NCBI RefSeq assembly: GCF_009834535.1
Contig: NC_045712.1
Location: forward strand, 24,738,001 to 24,802,000
From: Camelus ferus
Taxonomy: Eukaryota
Reading direction: 5' to 3'
DNA: 64,000 bases
Within the stretch, counting starts at the first letter, position 1; each line of letters opens with the position of its first letter. Under the pieces are notes generated by a model. It was given only the letters and a program-made list of their open reading frames with translations, was not told where the DNA came from and did not search any database. The position numbers and the translations under genes were made by a program. Below, one piece after another: positions 8,341 to 55,362 of this stretch.

Positions 8341-11300
8341 AGGAGTCCTTTGGGAACCAGGATTCAACTCTCATGCCCAGAAAGTTCTGCCCATTTTACA
8401 GATCTCCTCCCGATGCCTGCAAACATTTCCTGCCCTGCCGAGGGGTGGGTAAGCCTGAAGCTGCGGCTGGGAATGCTACCACAGGCACTCTGTCCTCAAG
8501 CATGTGCGGGTCTACGGATGAGTTACTGCCCATCAGGATGCTTGATGAGGATGTAAGCCCTAGGGAACTGGTCCTGGCTCCTTCTCTTTCATTCTCCTTT
8601 CTTTCCAGAGCCACAACCTGGCAAAGCAGGCAAGATGGGGAAGGCCAGCCCCTCTCAAGGGAGCCCAGGAACAAAGAGGGCCCCCAAACAGCTGCTCACA
8701 TTCCAGGCCAAGGCTGGGTACCTGATGGTCAGAAGTGGGGGTGCAAGTAGCTGACTGACTGGGAGCCTCCCTCCTCACCTCCCACCATAGTCCTGGGACG
8801 GGAGGGAGTAGCTGGGGCTCCAAGCTCAATGTCTTCCCAGGAAGCTCTGCGAACAGGAGAGCCAACACACACTTGAAATTGTCAAGTCTCAAGAACACAA
8901 AACTCCTTCAATTTGCTAAATATTGGTGGTCTCAGTTTGTTTGCTTCCCACCAGCCCCAGAAAACCTGGAAACAAAGGCAGAAGTGCCAGGTCTGGGGAG
9001 GAATAGAGAGGTGTGGGGGAGGGGATGAAGGTTTCCAAAAAAAACTAAGCTAGGCTCCTAGGCAGGGAGGGAGAGGGACAGAGGAACATGAGTGCTAGCT
9101 GGGCAGGCCCAAGGGTCCCAGTGCCCTAGGCCAGGGTCCATGAGCTAAGAAGAACCAGTTATGGCCACACAGGGCTCCAGGTCAGACAGACCTGCGTGCC
9201 AGATGCAGAGGACAGTTCCGTCCTCCACTCACCTGTGGCTATGCACAGGCCATTCAATCTCTCTGAGTCTTACTGGACCAACCTGGAAAATGGGGACAGT
9301 GACAGTACTCATATCCCTCAATGGCCGTGAGGATGGAATGAGAACACACAGAGAGCTCAGGTTAGCACAGGACCAAGTGCACACAGAGCAGAGATGGGCT
9401 TCAAGGTTTGCTTGGCTTCAGGGTTCTCCTGTGTCTTGCCTTGAGGTGGCCTCACAGTCTTCACCTCCATGTTCTTCAGATTATGGGGATATTCAGGTGC
9501 AGCCTCTGGGGCCCAGGGAGGTGGGCTCCCTCCAATCCAGCAGGTCACAGAAAATGATCTCAGATCCCGAGAGAGGCAGGACTGGGCTTTGCAAAAGTGG
9601 ACCAAGGATCAAGAGTCTGTGGATCATGTTTTGCTGTGAAAGGCTCAGTGAGGAGGGGGCAGACCCTCCAGCGTGGGGAGATCGTGGCTGATCTCAGGGG
9701 GGAACCCTGGCCATGGGAAACAACCTAAGCCAGGGACCCAAGTCAAGGAATTAACCCAGCCCTCAGCTTTGGCAGACTGGAGGAGGGGGCACCCCCACTT
9801 TCTTCGACAGACACCTTTACATCTGCAACTCCTCTGAGCACCCTCTCGAGCAACGCCCCCTTCTGCAAAGTGTGTGGTAACCTTGCGTTGGTCCCCTAAC
9901 CTCCCTGAGCCCCAGCTCCTCATCTGTGAAATGGGCACACACTCTCCTCACCCATGAGTGGGGCAGGCAGGTCTGGGACTATCAGCACCTGCTTTACAGG
10001 TAGGGAAAGAGGAGCAGAAAGAGCTATGGCCTCCACCCTCTCTCAGAGGTTACACAGTGTGTAAGTAGCAGGACCAGAACTCCCCTGCCCCCGGCAGGTG
10101 CCAGACCCTCACATTCCACCCATGGCCTTCCCACGGGGCTGAGGAGAGGCCGCACGGCATCTCGTGAGCCCTGCGAGTGCTTGCTCAGAGGGTCCAGCTC
10201 CTATTATTCTCCTTTAGCTTCTTAAAGGAGAAAATGATTTTTCTGTCAAAATCAGCTACACAATTGGTGAAACATTACCCTGGTTCTATTTCTTCTATGA
10301 CAGCGTGAAAACAAGACATATTCTTCGCAAGACTGAAAAACTTTTAGCAAACACAAGTGTTTTATTCTGAACTCAGAAATGCCTCTTCAGTGGGCCTTCC
10401 TCATGCAGAGACCCCCACCTCGGCCACTGAGGCTGTGCCCCAGCTGTACTGCAGTCATGCCAGCCCAGCCCATGCAGGGCGACAGAGGCAGTGGCCACCT
10501 TCCCTAAGCAGGGGCAACCAGGGCGAGTGAGGCCATGCCCAGGAGACCCCTGCTGAGGCACCCAGCTGGCCATGCCTCTGGCCAGCTCTGCAGAGGGGGA
10601 CCCAACAGCCTCTAGCTCTCGGAAGGACAGCTGGTTTCTTTCTCCCAGAGGAGATGTTACAAAGATGACAGAGAGTAAGAAGTGGGGGCTGCAGAGACCC
10701 TAGAGAAACGTCTGACTCTGCCCCCAAGACCTGCTCCTCCCAAAGCCAACACCACGTCTGCTCGGCAGCTCTCCCACTCCCCTGGGCTTCATCCACGTCC
10801 CTGCAGCTCCCCACACAGGCCTGGGTGAGCGCGGGCAGCCATCGCCCTCCTCAGGCTCCTCCCAGGGGAGGCAGGGGAACTGGCTGCCCAGGCTTCCAGC
10901 CTCCTTGGCCTTGGGCCCAGGCCCCTCTCTCTGCTGCTCCTGTTCAGCTAGGAGGCTCCCAAGCCTCCAACACCCAACCAGCTCCTGGGAAACTCCTGGT
11001 CTCTGGAGCCACAGCCATGAGGAAGGGGAAGCGAAAGAGGGAGGAAGGCCTCACCCTCTGGGAGGCTGGGACGGTGGCCTGGCAGCACCGAGGGACACTC
11101 CTGCCCTGGGAATGGGCTGCAGTGACTCATCTGTACTCTCTCAGCCTTCCTAGGGTAAAGACGCACCTTGGTACTGGCTTGGCCTGACTCAGAGATCGAA
11201 CTGAGCCACGGAGTGCGCTGGAGAGGGGTCTTAACCCCAGAGCTCCTGTTCCCAGCAGAACACACACCCCACGGTGGTGTCACCCCAGCTGACTGTTCCC

Positions 11301-24383: not shown

Positions 24384-24403
24384 TTCCTGGAAAGTTCTTG
24401 GAA
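24384..24403. promoter_or_regulatory. CISH promoter distal STAT5 (GAS) pair
   Basis: TTCCTGGAA (24384-24392) and TTCTTGGAA (24395-24403). Matches the known four-site STAT5 promoter of CISH. Confidence 0.93.
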
Positions 24404-24500
24404 ATCTGTCAAAGGTGTTTCCTTTAGCGGCCCTCGGCCCAAGACTAGGGAGCCGACGCCTCTGCCCGCACCTCTCCCCGCCGGGCCGCACAGCCGGCGG

Positions 24501-24526
24501 TTCTAGGAAGACATCGCTTCCGGGAA
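24501..24526. promoter_or_regulatory. CISH promoter proximal STAT5 (GAS) pair
   Basis: TTCTAGGAA (24501-24509) and TTCCGGGAA (24518-24526), 8-bp spacer. Confidence 0.93.
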
Positions 24527-28584: not shown

Positions 28585-29108
28585 GCTGGTATTGGGGTTC
28601 CATTACGGCCAGCGAGGCCCGGCAACACCTGCAGAGGATGCCAGAGGGCACATTCCTAGTACGCGACAGCACCCACCCCAGCTACCTGTTCACACTGTCT
28701 GTCAAAACCACCCGCGGCCCCACCAACGTGCGCATCGAGTATGCAGACTCCAGCTTCCGCCTGGACTCCAACTGCCTGTCCAGGCCGCGCATCCTGGCCT
28801 TCCCAGATGTGGTCAGCCTTGTCCAGCACTATGTGGCCTCCTGTGCTGCAGATACCCGAAGCGACAGTCCTGACCCTGCACCTACCCCGGCTCTGTCTAC
28901 ACCTAAGGAAGATGTGCCTGGTGACCCAGCACTGCCTGCTACTGCTGTGCACCTAAAACTGGTGCAGCCCTTTGTGCGCAGAAGCAGTGCTCGAAGCCTG
29001 CAGCACCTGTGCCGCCTCGTCATCAACCGTCTGGTGGCTGACGTGGACTGCCTCCCACTGCCCCGGCGCATGGCTGACTACCTCCGACAGTACCCCTTCC
29101 AGCTCTGA
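28585..29108 (+). CDS. CISH: CISH coding exon 3: SH2 domain, PEST insert, SOCS box
   Basis: Acceptor cttgcctag|. Encodes [28 protein letters not shown]...[40 protein letters not shown]. Total CDS is 20+221+524 = 765 nt = 254 aa. Confidence 0.98.
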
Positions 29109-30147: not shown

Positions 30148-30153
30148 AATAAA
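30148..30153 (+). terminator. CISH polyadenylation signal
   Basis: AATAAA about 1.04 kb after the stop, preceded by a T-rich tract and followed directly by a MIR. Confidence 0.8.
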
Positions 30154-30169
30154 ATTGTATCTTTCACTT

Positions 30170-30305
30170 ACAGAGCCCTCAGTGGGGCCTCTTTTGAGTT
30201 CTGCACAGTTTGTCTCCTTCAATCTTATTATTGTTATCCCCCACTTTATATCTGGGTCAGCAGAGGCCCAGAGACCTATGTGGCTGAGCAGCCCTGCTAG
30301 TGGAC
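30170..30305 (-). mobile_element. MIR SINE abutting the CISH polyA site
   Basis: gagttctgcacagtttgtctccttcaatctt...attgttatccccactttatatctgggtcagcagaggcccagaga. Confidence 0.6.
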
Positions 30306-31519
30306 CACTGAAGAGTGGAGGGGGCAGGGAATGGCCTTTCTCCACTCCTTTCCTCTTGTTCCCTCTGGAGGGTGGGAGGCAGGAGGTAAAGGCCAGTTGG
30401 ATTGCCTGCAGGGTCCAGTGCCAGGTTTGGGGTGGTGGCAGAGGAGCATCAGACCTGATAGAGGTACAGACAGGAGATGTCAATTAAAGACAAAGTGGAG
30501 AATTCTGGGGGGAATGGGTGCTATGGACAGCTCCAGGGGCCAGCGTCTTTTGAGATGAGGAGGCCAACAGTCAGAGAAGTCAGGGCCAGTCACTTTACAG
30601 GGAGTGCAAAGGCACCAGGGCATGACTGGGAAGCTCATATTCCCAACCACAAGGAGGCCTGGGGAAGAGTCATTCTGTGCAGCGCTGCAGACAGTTGAGT
30701 TGGGGATGGTGGCCAGTAAGCTGGCAGGATCTGACCTGAGGTGTGGTGATGGGGTTTGGGCCCAGCTGGCTGGGGTTTGAGGACTCTCTTCTCGCACTCA
30801 GGGTCCTGGAAACCAGAAGTAGGTGGAAGAGCAACTAAAATGTAAACACTCTCCATTGTCTGATGGTCTGATCTTGGAGCACTTCAGCACCTGGAATCCC
30901 ACCATGTCCTGAAATTTTCTGCCCCTTTACTTGAGTACCTCACAGGAAAGCTCCTCTGAACCTCATTCATAGCCTTTTAACACTTAGTTTAGAAATAGTT
31001 CTAACCTTTCTATTTTCTTAGCCTCTAGGCAATTAGAAGTTACAGCTGAGAAGAGGCAAATGCTGGCAGGTTGGAAGCAGGAAGGTGTGAGGAGTGACAT
31101 GTTGTTAAGGAGGAGGCAGGAAAGGATAAAAAGCAAGAACTATGGAGGCATAGGACCTTGAAGGCATGGAGATATTTGTGGCCAAGAAAGGACCTGCTAC
31201 TGGGTAAGAGTGAGTGAGAGGTGGGTGAGGGCTCTCTGTACTGGGAGTGGGGCCCAGGCCCACATGTCCCGCCTGGCACCTTGTCTGTTGCTGGCCGCAG
31301 GGCCCGACAGCAGCCCTCCTCCAGGTCACCATGGCCCTGCCAGCGATGTCTTTGGTTCCTCATTGTTTCAGCCTGGATCTCAGCCCCTTGGTGACTCCCA
31401 GAATGCCTGAGGTGACCCCTCTGTCTGCTCCACCCCCAGATCAAGTACCCAGTAGTGGGGTAGTGGACACAGAGCGGCCAAAGGCAGGCTATTTCCCACC
31501 TGGTGCCATGGCCCAGAGA

Positions 31520-36415: not shown

Positions 36416-37145
36416 TGACCTTTCCACTTGGCCAACATTCCTTTGTTTTTCTCAGTTCCTTCGGGTAGAGTAGGAGGAGCTGTTAGGAGAGCAGGTTCTC
36501 AGGAAATCTTTTCTCCAAAGCCCATGAGACAAAGAGCGCAAGGAGACACTGGAAAACGAAGGCTTATCCAGAAGACGGGTTCCCAGGGCAGTTAGAGGAT
36601 TGTGGGTAAGAGACAAAGAGGAGTGTCCTAATAGAGAGCTCTTAACCTCAGTGTGAGTGCCTAAGGGGGCTGGCTCCTCGGCATCCTGCCCAGGTCAGTG
36701 TTGTCACCCTGGCATCTAGTGGGCAGGCTGAGCTGAGGCAGGCAAAGCTGGGTGACCCTGGGCAGATTGCTTTATCTCTCTGGGCCATATATGTCTCAAA
36801 GTAGACCAAAGTCCTGAGTTTGCTGTCAGTATGATCAGCTCACGCTCTCTCTATGCCAGAGGTGCCCAGGCTGGGTTTCTATAGCCCTTTTTCTCTACTC
36901 AGAGCCAGCAGATGCCTGATCCGGGGCTGTGAGCTTTGGGGCAGTAGCACCCCCTCTCAGCACTGTGATAATCCCCCCCACCTCCCCATCTCCTCTGGGT
37001 CTCAGTGACTGAATTAGGGAGTGCTAGGCTCCACGAGGATCCCTGGGCCTGGTAGAAGGCAGAGAAGGCGTGGCATGGGCACCCCCGCCCCCACCCTGGA
37101 TGAGATGTTTTCGCTAGAATCGAAGCAGCTGCGGCTAGAGGCCTC

Positions 37146-38095
37146 TTCCCAGGAAGTAAGAGCAGAGGCCTCTTCCAAGAACTCAGAGGAGGCCTGCAGG
37201 CAGGGGAGGGGGGAGTGGGGGAGTTAATTTTAAACCAAACAGCCTTCAACGCTCCTCAGGAACTGGTTGCTCAATGTGATCTGGCAGGTCCCAGGCGGGT
37301 GGGCGGGCCTGGTGCCAGCTCAGGCTGAGCGGGGTGTGTGGAGGACACGCCCCAGAGGGGGAGGCCCAGTGACCTTGAGGGAAGTTGGGCCCTGTCCTTG
37401 CCCACGAATCAGGGCCTGTCACCCCCAACCCCACCTACCCAACCCAACTTGTTGAGGGTGTGGGGTGAGATGATTTCCTCTGTCATAATCAGGCAGGGTG
37501 AAATTATAACAAGATTAATAATATAGGTGTCATGTCCTTCCAAGAACTGACTATTCCACTCCCCTTCCCTGCTCAGAACTTGCCACTCCTGTCCCCTGGC
37601 TTGTACCACTGGAGGTTATCTGATGAAGGCCTGCTCTGGGGCCAAAGTAAGGCTTGTGTCATTTGCCTACTAGATGGGACTTTGGGGTGGTGGTGGAGGG
37701 ATGGAGGGTGGAGTGGAGCAAGTTGGGCCCAAGTTCTGAGACTAAAGGGTGAGTCTCCTGTGTGTGCAGGGAGGCTCTGAGCTGAACACACTGGGCCTAC
37801 CCCCGCCCCCATAGCTGGCAGGGAGTCAGAATGCCTTCACACACATTGACCTCCCCCTCAACCCTAGTGTGGCCACCCCCTCCAGACTGACAGCCTAAGC
37901 CCACCTCTCAGTGTCTGGACCCCAGAGGCCCCGCCCAGGGCACCCCTTCCCTCCCTTCCTCCACCAGCTGCCCAATAAGACCCAGCAGCCTGGGCGGGGT
38001 GAGGCCTGTGTTCTAGGAAAGGATCCTAGGCAAGAGCTGCCAGGAGCCTCAGTTCTTGGAATTGGCGCTGCAGAGCGAGGGGATGCTTCCTGGAA
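37146..38095. promoter_or_regulatory. Candidate STAT5 enhancer downstream of CISH
   Basis: Five TTCYNRGAA sites (37173, 37538, 38011, 38053, 38087), one TTC-N4-GAA site (37146), and GC boxes (37801, 37929, 37992). Confidence 0.65.
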
Positions 38096-39809
38096 CCTCC
38101 TGGCCACTCCAGGGAGAGGCTCAGAGACAGGGCTGTGACCTAGGTAAGGGAATGTGGTGCTGAGGCCTCAGCCGGGGTCCTTGCCTCCAGTAAGCCCTCT
38201 CTGATTGTGGGTGTCCCCTTAGACTCCCCTATCTTGACACTGAGTCTGGAGGGCCCTTCTAAGGGATCTGCCAGGACAGGCCCAGATCTGGTGCAGCCTC
38301 TTCAGTACCTAGCGTCCAGCCCAGGGACAGGTACAGTGTTGACAACCAGAAAGAGTAGGGAGAAAAGGGGAGTGTGTGCCTGGGGAGAAGGGCTTTGTGC
38401 AGGTGTGGGGACACAGGTGAAAGCGGGATGTTAGGTGTGAGTGAGCAGCCAGGGGTATGAAGGGCTAAGAGGGAGAAGGGAGAGCAAAATGCCAGGCCCT
38501 GCTTGCTGAGTCCCTTGTTGGTGGACAGACAACTTCTGGTCAGGACTTCTGTGTCTCCTTCAGGCCAGTCATTTCCTACAGGGCCTCTCCCTCAGATCCC
38601 TGTCCCACAGCTGAGGTACGGGGCCTGCTCCAGTGTCAGGCCACTTGGTGTGATCCTACCACCGGTGCACAGCTGTGCATCCTGAGCACACATCTGGCCC
38701 ATTAGAGCCATAGTTACCCTATTTAGAGAATAAAAAGAAGCTGCAGGGCCCCCAGGAAGGCCATGAGGGTTGTGACCCTATTCTGAGACTGGGTTGGGGC
38801 CTAGTCACACTTCCAGGGAGCTGCCATAAGTATTCCTATCACAGGGTCCCAGGGTCAGCAGTGGCCTTGAAGTCTGGCTGAGGGGACCGGGGAGCATGTC
38901 AGGGCTGGCACAGAGAAGTAAGGTTCTCCCTCTCTGGTTGGGTGACCTTGGGGCTTGGGGCAGCCTTTTAACCACTCAGAACCTGTTTGCCTTCAGAAGA
39001 ATGGAGAACCCTAACTGGCCAAGACTCTCCTCTCCCTTGCCTCTCCTCTCATGTCCTCAGGTCAATCCTTGGATCTGACTGAGCACAGCCCCAGGCCTGC
39101 TACCCACCCACCCCCAACAAGTCACAGAGAAGGGGGCCCCCAGCGCATCCCCTAGAGGCCAGGCCTGGGGTTGAGAAGGGCTGAGATTCAGTGCCTGGGC
39201 GGGGGTTGTGAGGTGGGGCTGTGACTGAGAGGTCCTTTGAGCCCTGCAGGAGGATGGTGGGGCAGCCTAGGGACCTAGTTCATTATCATAATTCTCTGGC
39301 ATGACCTGCAGCAGCAGGCAGTGGGAGCACTGCATTCTCCACCACTCAGAGGCCATGACATCTGCACCAAGGCCAGGCTGGCCTTGACTGGGAGGCTGCC
39401 ATGGGAGGACTGAACCTGGAATCACCCGACCTGAGTGGGAAGAGCTGCTAGGTGGCACCTACTGGGTTTGCAGGGGACACTGGTGTCCTGCTACATATAG
39501 GTGGTTCCAGAGCCAGGCACCCTGCATAACTTGAGCCAGTCATGAATTCTTATCTTACAGAATCCTGGTGAGGAGTAAATGTATAGATTTGATGAATTTT
39601 CTCCTTGGGGTCTCCTCCCTAGTCCCACCCCACTCCTCCGACTCCCCCTTGGCCATGAGCCCATGTAGACACGAGTCCCAGAAGCACTCTCTCTCTGGCC
39701 CTTACTGCAGCAGGAAGAACTCTGGACACACCCGCTCCTTCCACAGGAGCACAGGCCCTGATGTTCACAGTGCTCTAGGCGAAAGGCAAATAGAGGCCCT
39801 CACTACAGA

Positions 39810-40440
39810 ATCTAAATATTTAAAATCATAAATCAAGCCACAAACTGCTAATAAAATATGCTCTATCCTCCTACTCAACAAATAAACTTTCATAACAATA
39901 ATAAATCTGTAAATCTGCAGTTTTTATATGTCTCAAATTCATATAAAATATCAGAAAGTCAGACATCAAATATGCTTGAGTTTAAGAGTTGTTACTCATG
40001 TCCAGGCATCTAGTGATGTGAGTCAGAAGGTAAAGATGTGCCTAATTTAAAAGGTATTACATACTTTTTCTGTAACATTTACTGTTCTTGCTTTTATTCC
40101 AGGAAAAATATTATGTTTTCTAATCAAGATTTTCATAATTTCTATCTATTAGCAGTAGTGATTTAACAGGTTAAAATAAAATATTAAATTCCAAGGTCAC
40201 AAAAATATGAACTAAATTAAATTTAAAATATTTTAAAACTGAAAGTATTTATAATATAGTCCAAAAAGTTGTTTTTAAAATAATCAAAATTAGTGAAAAT
40301 TAAGTCAAAATACAAACTATTGAGTTATAATGAACTAATGTAAAAATCTAAATCAAAAAGATTTAAAACTAAAATTTTATTCAACTTTTTGAAATTTCTA
40401 TTAAGTTTTAAATATCTTTATAGAAATAAACCTCCCCAAT
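39810..40440. mobile_element. AT-rich relic, probably an old hAT-type DNA transposon (family not confirmed)
   Basis: Abrupt, strongly AT-rich block in GC-rich surroundings. No open reading frame. Confidence 0.45.
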
Positions 40441-54335: not shown

Positions 54336-54471
54336 CAGAGTGAGCCTCTCTTTCAACACCATTGCCCCTTTCAGCCCCCTAATCTCCCTATCCCCCTGAT
54401 GGTGTGGTCCTCCAGGACAGGCCCATCCCACTAGACCTTCTCAGGCCTGGCCTCCCTGGTCTACCACACAC

Positions 54472-54580
54472 CTGAGGATCTCAGGGGCCAGCTGCTCCAT
54501 GTCCCGGTGGAAGACGTAGGGAGGGTTGCTGACGATCAGGTCCACGGGGCCCCAGGGTAGAATATGTGCCCAGCTGTCCT
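54472..54580 (-). CDS. HEMK1: HEMK1 coding exon 7 (109 bp), NPPY catalytic motif
   Basis: [35 protein letters not shown]. cag|...|gtgtgt. Confidence 0.95.
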
Positions 54581-55362
54581 CTGTGGTCAAGGGGAACAAA
54601 CAGCAGAGAATGGGAGGTAAAGGGTGGTAGCTCCAGGCACCACCATGTCCCTTGGGTAATCCCTCTTCCCAAGCCTATCTCTGAACCCAATAAACTAGAC
54701 TTACAGATTACTGCCCAGGGTCCCCAGTCAGCAGCCTGGCTGGGAATGTGTATGCTGTGACATGGCAGTTCTCCCCCTGGAGTGTCCCTGCCCTCTCTTC
54801 TTCCTGTTAAAAATCTCCTCAGTAAGCAAGACTCAACTCAGGTGCCGCCTTGAGGCAGCCATCTCTGATTGCCTGCGCAAAGCAAGAGCCTCTGTCCTCT
54901 GCAGCCCCAGAGGCCTTGCCACTCCACCTCATAGCCAACACGGACTAAGTGTATGGAGGGCAGGCCTGGCCTCAGTCAATTGATTCCTGGTGACTTTGTC
55001 TACTGGTCCCATCCTGAGCCAAGTGCTATACCAGCTGTACACTCCATGGAGGGGGCACACAAACTCAAGGATCCTGTGGACAAGTGATGGGACCAGAACT
55101 GGTGCCAGGGCCCCCGAGGACACTCTGTAAAGGCAGAGCCCAAGTTGTGTTGTGCTGGGGCCTGACAGGGGCAGGGGGACACTCAAGTATTCTGGTCCCA
55201 AAGGCTTTCTTTTGAGCTTCTGCTTATCTCTTGACAACAAGCCCTAGGTACGGGGATATGGAAGGTAAGGAAGACACTGAGGCTGATCTCTTCAGGGGTC
55301 AGGTCAGCCTAGGAGGCAATAGGGACTTGCCTGTCCTCAGCAAGGACTACTCTGAGATACCC

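Follow-up and report, generated by a model that had tools for sequence, protein, structure and literature searches.

The STAT motif cluster located downstream of CISH in the Camelus ferus window (the whole stretch of 64,000 nucleotides analysed, to which all positions refer) can with fair confidence be regarded as a conserved distal STAT-responsive enhancer of CISH, composed of two modules (hereafter blocks A and B) and serving cytokine-induced feedback. Our analysis revealed an excess of motifs over chance, conservation of their position, spacing and consensus, and orthology of the first module with the human enhancer CISH-2. Published elements are orthologous to this region, which is therefore essentially already known: a CISH enhancer region has been described in human and mouse. 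By comparison, we did not find descriptions of (i) the 42/34 bp spacing of the sites in block B, (ii) the turnover of these sites within their consensus, (iii) the therian age of block A, or (iv) the loss of one TTC-N4-GAA site that is private to this genome.

Motif density and genomic setting of the cluster

CISH is encoded on the + strand, with the stop codon at 29108 marking the end of the last coding exon and the poly(A) signal located at 30148, and HEMK1 on the − strand, with its catalytic NPPY exon at 54444-54674. The cluster is intergenic between these two genes, 7.0–7.9 kb past the end of CISH as taken from the poly(A) signal, in agreement with the 7–8 kb of the original prediction. 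All motifs quoted in that prediction were recovered in their places by motif search: TTCYNRGAA is matched at 37173, 37538, 38011, 38053 and 38087, and TTC-N4-GAA at 37146, to which a second instance at 37110 can be added. Copies of the 11-mer TTCCAAGAACT occur at 37173 and 37538; its complement AGTTCTTGGAA is found at 38051 in the cluster and at 24393 in the CISH promoter, as expected from the claim of three copies in the cluster and one in the promoter. The three GC boxes likewise proved to be present (37803, 37931 and 37992), along with two more at 37085 and 37301.

The cluster thus contains five TTCYNRGAA matches in 950 bp, three of them within 85 bp. When the sequence was shuffled 2000 times with dinucleotides preserved inside 2-kb blocks, not a single shuffle gave ≥3 matches per 100 bp or ≥5 per 1 kb, so that the earlier impression of a cluster denser than chance holds; the local expectation for this 1.2-kb stretch is 0.08 sites. 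The whole window contains 17 matches versus 5.7 ± 2.3 expected, and the 8 located beyond promoter and cluster, close to the ‘about seven’ isolated matches counted earlier by eye, are approximately at chance level.

Other readings of the interval were considered and rejected. A CpG island or promoter is discounted by a CpG observed/expected ratio of 0.17 at the cluster, compared with 0.69 at the CISH promoter. A CTCF insulator is rejected because the CTCF core motif has no match with ≤1 mismatch in 37000-38200; RAD21, moreover, is unbound at human CISH-2. A coding or HEMK1 exon is contradicted by indels of 1 and 4 bp in block A, which are not multiples of three, and by the distance to the HEMK1 catalytic exon at 54.4 kb. 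HEMK1 gene models on the minus strand of two other loci, Tamandua (L005 14998-24099) and Ochotona (L008 14924-24172), reach to ~0.9 kb from the CISH stop codon and would place the enhancer cluster within a long terminal HEMK1 intron; these models are probably read-through or over-extended.

Block A and the human enhancer CISH-2

For comparison, orthologous loci were located via CISH proteins, using the last exon as query, and fetched with 10-kb flanks from Kogia, Trichechus, Tamandua, Trichosurus (possum), Microtus, Ochotona and Saccopteryx, together with two short mouse contigs. The region downstream of CISH can be aligned in all placentals, and the alignment of seven placentals (the window plus six others) exhibits two conservation peaks, which correspond to blocks A and B. 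Position, spacing and consensus of the motifs are conserved across four placental superorders. The TTC-N4-GAA site and four of the five TTC-N3-GAA sites are kept in the seven placentals, so that the conservation of the sites in orthologues, on which the original prediction had been made to depend, was observed for all but one of them: the GAS TTCCAAGAA at 37538..37546, located between the blocks, is lineage-specific. At this column the remaining species have TTCCAAGG or TTCCAAGAG, and the seven-species alignment indicates that the site arose in this lineage via a small deletion. The mouse contigs stop ~1 kb before block A, and two metagenome scans for the mouse element with block A patterns retrieved nothing; the possum locus ends before the expected position of block B, and the marsupial comparison therefore covers block A only.

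Block A (approximately 37050..37420) constitutes a composite enhancer module that is nearly invariant, with a mean column identity of 0.87–0.96 over ~270 bp in the seven placentals. Past a conserved neighbouring E-box at 37126, the sequence TTCCCAGGAA (37146..37155), a TTC-N4-GAA site with STAT6-type spacing, is present in 7/7 placentals and starts 23–28 bp ahead of the GAS TTCCAAGAA at 37173..37181, a distance that is borderline for the spacing of tetramer sites. This GAS shows an identity of 1.0 in the seven placentals, its flanks being invariant as well, and is followed by an AT-rich homeodomain-like core GTTAATTTTAAAC (37223..37235) that is invariant in the seven placentals and the possum. 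A further N4 site at 37253..37262 is degenerate in the window: a T-to-C change private to this genome turns it into TCCTCAGGAA and destroys the palindrome; the remaining six placentals have TTCTCAGGAA at this place, and the possum TTCTTAGGAA. Downstream are located a C/EBP-like motif TTGCTCAA (37267-37274; 7/7 placentals), an NFI half-site TGGCA (37282-37286; 6/7 placentals, Microtus having AGGCA), and, on the − strand, a nuclear-receptor half-site TCAAGGTCA (37370..37378) whose GACCTTGA is invariant in the seven placentals. A profile of block A matches the possum locus (nhmmer, E = 2.7e-14), where the core retains TTCCAAGAACT (L006 25856), the AT-rich core, the N4 site and a perfect C/EBP core TTGCGCAA, without TGGCA. 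Judged by this sequence comparison, the core of block A dates back to therian ancestry. The 10-mer TTCCCAGGAA also occurs at 8834-8843, towards MAPKAPK3 and ~16 kb ahead of the CISH promoter. One SNP is placed by the literature near SNPs on the MAPKAPK3 side, with no distance stated.

Two ER-bound enhancers downstream of CISH have been described for human cells, with guides and primers given in supplements from the Gertz laboratory (Carleton, Gertz and colleagues; PMC7337896, PMC6769255). Six published CISH-2 oligonucleotides map collinearly, with 1–4 mismatches, on 37103-37414 (37103-37122, 37167-37189, 37184-37201, 37235-37257, 37262-37284 and 37395-37414), and do so equally well on the loci of other species. 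Those for CISH-1 map at ~31285-31504, ~5.8 kb nearer to CISH, and the two enhancers thereby follow each other in the published order. Both sequence and synteny downstream of CISH thus agree with orthology to human CISH-2, which occupies the same downstream position and binds factors that match the C/EBP, NFI and E-box motifs of block A. The protospacer targeted by human guide CISH-2_614 includes the GAS at 37173.

Acetylation of CISH-2 in human Ishikawa cells is constitutive and seen without cytokine stimulation, and the enhancer is bound by p300, Pol II, CEBPB, NFIC, TCF12 and MAX (PMC7337896, PMC6769255). When it is deleted, acetylation is lost at CISH-1 and reduced at the promoter, and CISH no longer responds to oestrogen; deletion and interference alike show it to be necessary for CISH activation in endometrial cells, and, as dCas9-VP16 targeted to CISH-2 activates CISH, CRISPRa shows it to be sufficient (PMC7337896, PMC6769255). 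Because the CISH-2 oligonucleotides map onto block A and human CISH-2 has been characterized by deletion and activation, block A is identified, at the level of sequence, as the orthologue of a validated human CISH enhancer. In these studies, its activity was explained via ER and other factors and not via STAT5 (PMC7337896, PMC6769255); the texts consulted treat CISH-2, studied in endometrial cancer cells, as an enhancer of the oestrogen response that contains a half ERE, and do not discuss its STAT sites. The 166-bp core deleted in human cells adjoins the GAS at 37173 and does not cover it, and the perfect half-site TCAAGGTCA is located within the CISH-2 amplicon but beyond the deleted core.

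Two further observations concern the same oligonucleotide sets. The matches of the full-ERE enhancer CISH-1 at 31285-31504 require 3–4 edits in this genome and are clearer in Kogia and Saccopteryx; the ERE-like sequence AGGTCACCATGGCCC at 31323-31337 has a degenerate second half, so that this species may have a weaker oestrogen-response element or none. Two of four ‘Cishprom’ guides match best, with 4–5 mismatches and hence weakly, at 30177-30255, past the CISH poly(A) signal, which is probably due to chance.

Block B and the CISH promoter

Block B (approximately 37965..38140; column identity 0.79–0.89) contains three GAS: B1, TTCTAGGAA at 38011..38019; B2, TTCTTGGAA at 38053..38061; and B3, TTCCTGGAA at 38087..38095. 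It is located ~550 bp past the end of the CISH-2 amplicon (~600 bp for the first GAS), and none of the published guides map there. B1 matches the consensus in 6/7 species (it is lost in Microtus, which reads CTCTAAGAA), B2 matches TTCYNRGAA in 6/7 (Ochotona reads TTCTTTGAA), and B3 does so in 7/7 with varying centres, so that 19 of 21 site instances conform. The TTC and GAA halves at exact N3 spacing are retained in 20 of the 21 site-by-species instances, and the start-to-start distances are 41–42 bp for B1-B2 and 33–34 bp for B2-B3 in all seven species. Counted by alignment cell, the half-sites deviate from consensus once in 126, versus 176 in 1043 (17%) for the remainder of block B (Fisher p = 1e-8, to be read descriptively only, since the species are related), and 10 of the 63 centre cells vary, with changes that remain within TTCYNRGAA.

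The promoter of CISH provides the context for these sites and lies outside the finding itself. It contains a quartet of GAS on the + strand (24384..24526; sites at 24384, 24395, 24501 and 24518), the same four 9-mers being found in 8/8 fetched placental loci. Closely spaced tandem GAS, within roughly two helical turns of each other, represent the arrangement of STAT5 tetramer sites. The promoter sites form two tight pairs, with starts 11 and 17 bp apart, and have this spacing; a separation of 2 nt within a promoter pair has been noted in the literature on Cish GAS sites. In contrast, the sites of block B are 33–42 bp apart, unlike tight tandem pairs, and block B is for this reason not classed as a STAT5 tetramer site.

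The original prediction also emphasized that the cluster reuses 9-mers of the promoter. Three identical 9-mers are indeed present in this genome and belong to the same motif class, but their identity is not conserved, as other species carry TTCTCAGAA, TTCCTAGAA or a second TTCTTGGAA, and it does not reflect a duplication: a comparison of promoter and block B with blastn-short yielded nothing in common beyond the motifs themselves, and in profile searches block B is single-copy in the window. A common site preference of STAT5 would likely account for the matching 9-mers.

Proposed cytokine response and alternative readings

For orthologues it has been reported that the enhancer acts on CISH, that STATs bind downstream of the gene, and that accessibility at +11.4 kb depends on IL-2; these properties would be carried over to this genome by analogy. 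Kang et al. 2013 (PMC3564941) found a ‘Cish downstream region’ to be bound by STAT4, STAT5 and STAT6 in T cells and by STAT5 in liver, a usage that agrees with the mixture of N3 and N4 sites in the cluster; their gene table places mouse Cish at chr9:107199019-107204292 (+) in mm9. Bevington et al. 2020 (PMC7667885) described a primed DNase site that depends on IL-2, located at chr9:107210362 (+11372 relative to the Cish TSS) and decreasing 5–12-fold upon IL-2 withdrawal, and JAK inhibition likewise lowers IL-2-dependent primed DNase sites. In the vole Microtus, the estimated TSS is ~10.45 kb away from the block A GAS and ~11.3 kb from block B, and mouse is ~100 bp shorter than vole up to the last alignable point. 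Extrapolation from vole, accurate to about ±200 bp, would thus place block B at ~+11.15–11.3 kb in mouse, that is, within DNase resolution of the +11.4 kb site. The mouse downstream sites are hence found on the same side of the gene and, after vole scaling, at a matching distance.

Further data show that this is one element among several. The STAT site common to six mouse cell types is the one at +16.5 kb (PMC3564941), an element distinct from block B, and the 302 pSTAT5 peaks called in mouse erythroid cells after EPO stimulation mark the Cish promoter and +16.4 kb while leaving +10–11.5 kb from Cish without a peak. The STAT5-bound enhancer highlighted as IL-2-induced in human CD4 T cells lies >40 kb downstream of CISH. 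Because these findings, together with those for CISH-2, temper the STAT5 reading, occupancy of the present element is, by analogy with its orthologues, probably cell-type dependent (T cells, liver), with the element being one of several downstream of the gene. Isolated GAS matches occur at 40097, 41395, 43891 and 46682, between the cluster and HEMK1, in a part of the window short of which the fetched orthologous loci end; one of the four, 43891 being the best placed, might be the counterpart of the mouse +16.5 kb site. According to the summary in PMC6262064, Li et al. 2017 named Cish as a STAT5-bound super-enhancer gene, and the loci described there (Il2ra, Cish) resemble the present one in that multiple STAT5 elements are distributed across a strongly IL-2-induced locus. 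Super-enhancer status, however, is a matter of ChIP signal density and not of sequence.

The proposal of a distal cytokine/STAT5 enhancer of CISH is thus supported by (i) the conserved position, spacing and consensus of its motifs across placentals, with the block A core shared by a marsupial, (ii) the mapping of the first half of the interval onto deletion-validated human CISH-2, (iii) the STAT binding reported downstream of mouse Cish, and (iv) the mouse DNase site at +11.4 kb that depends on IL-2. We consider it unlikely that the enhancer, albeit conserved, is driven mainly by C/EBP, NFI, bHLH, ER and ETS/Ikaros-type factors with its GAS being incidental. Such a view would draw on the acetylation and factor binding of human CISH-2 without cytokine and its role in the oestrogen response, on the uniform conservation of block A, where GAS sites are no more conserved than their flanks, and on the high affinity of Ikaros for GGAA halves in the GAS sites of Cish, motifs containing GGAA being usable by ETS or Ikaros factors as well. 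What it accommodates less readily is block B, since TTC and GAA halves kept at N3 in 20 of 21 instances while the centres drift are better explained by a palindromic STAT dimer site, and the STAT binding and IL-2/JAK-dependent accessibility reported downstream of Cish likewise argue against it.

A STAT-responsive enhancer acting mainly on another gene, be it HEMK1, MAPKAPK3 or one further away, appears quite improbable. It is true that the element is intergenic between CISH (+) and HEMK1 (−), that the HEMK1 models of two species extend to within 1 kb of CISH, and that IL-2-dependent DNase sites are found within Hemk1 as well (PMC7667885). However, deletion, interference and CRISPRa at human CISH-2 all alter the expression of CISH, the gene that cytokines strongly induce at this locus and whose own promoter has the motif type of the element. 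The notion that chance or composition produced the cluster as an artefact, or that the promoter was recently repeated or duplicated here, might have been suggested by the three 9-mers equal to those of the promoter and by the recent, lineage-specific gain at 37538; with 0 of 2000 shuffles attaining the observed density, a similarity to the promoter that is limited to motifs, no second copy in the window, and a single-copy orthologous alignment spanning placental superorders, it is already refuted and retains hardly any probability.

Within the favoured reading of a STAT-responsive CISH enhancer, we infer that STAT5 acts via exactly these sites, and that it does so in this species. Block A would then represent a constitutive platform for C/EBP, NFI, bHLH and nuclear receptors onto which STAT5/STAT6 inputs are grafted (an invariant N3 GAS and two N4 sites, the second of which has decayed in this genome), and which, as in human cells, would maintain the acetylation of its neighbourhood and be required for CISH induction. 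Block B would add an array of three STAT5-type dimer sites at fixed spacing. Upon signalling by IL-2/IL-7/IL-15, GH or prolactin, and by IL-4 via the N4 sites, both blocks would become occupied by dimers of phosphorylated STATs, which would recruit p300/Mediator, and the occupied blocks would contact the CISH promoter with its own two GAS pairs, so that CISH transcription is amplified and negative feedback strengthened. It is tempting to go further, albeit with somewhat less than even confidence, and to speculate that block B is a separate STAT5 dimer array whose 42/34 bp spacing has been held for ~100 million years since it reflects a required STAT-coactivator geometry distinct from that of the promoter tetramer pairs, and that, along with the N4 and N3 sites of block A, it forms a pan-STAT integrator (STAT5, STAT4, STAT6) setting the gain of CISH feedback.

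Rather than revealing a new kind of element, the analysis provides a motif grammar at base level that could guide mutagenesis, and it joins in one conserved sequence three literatures, namely those on the oestrogen-responsive CISH-2 enhancer, on STAT binding downstream of Cish, and on IL-2-dependent chromatin priming. In T and NK cells, CISH serves as a checkpoint for IL-2/IL-15 signalling, and it is also a feedback gene for GH and prolactin; its distal control elements bear on variants of infection susceptibility and on engineered CISH expression.
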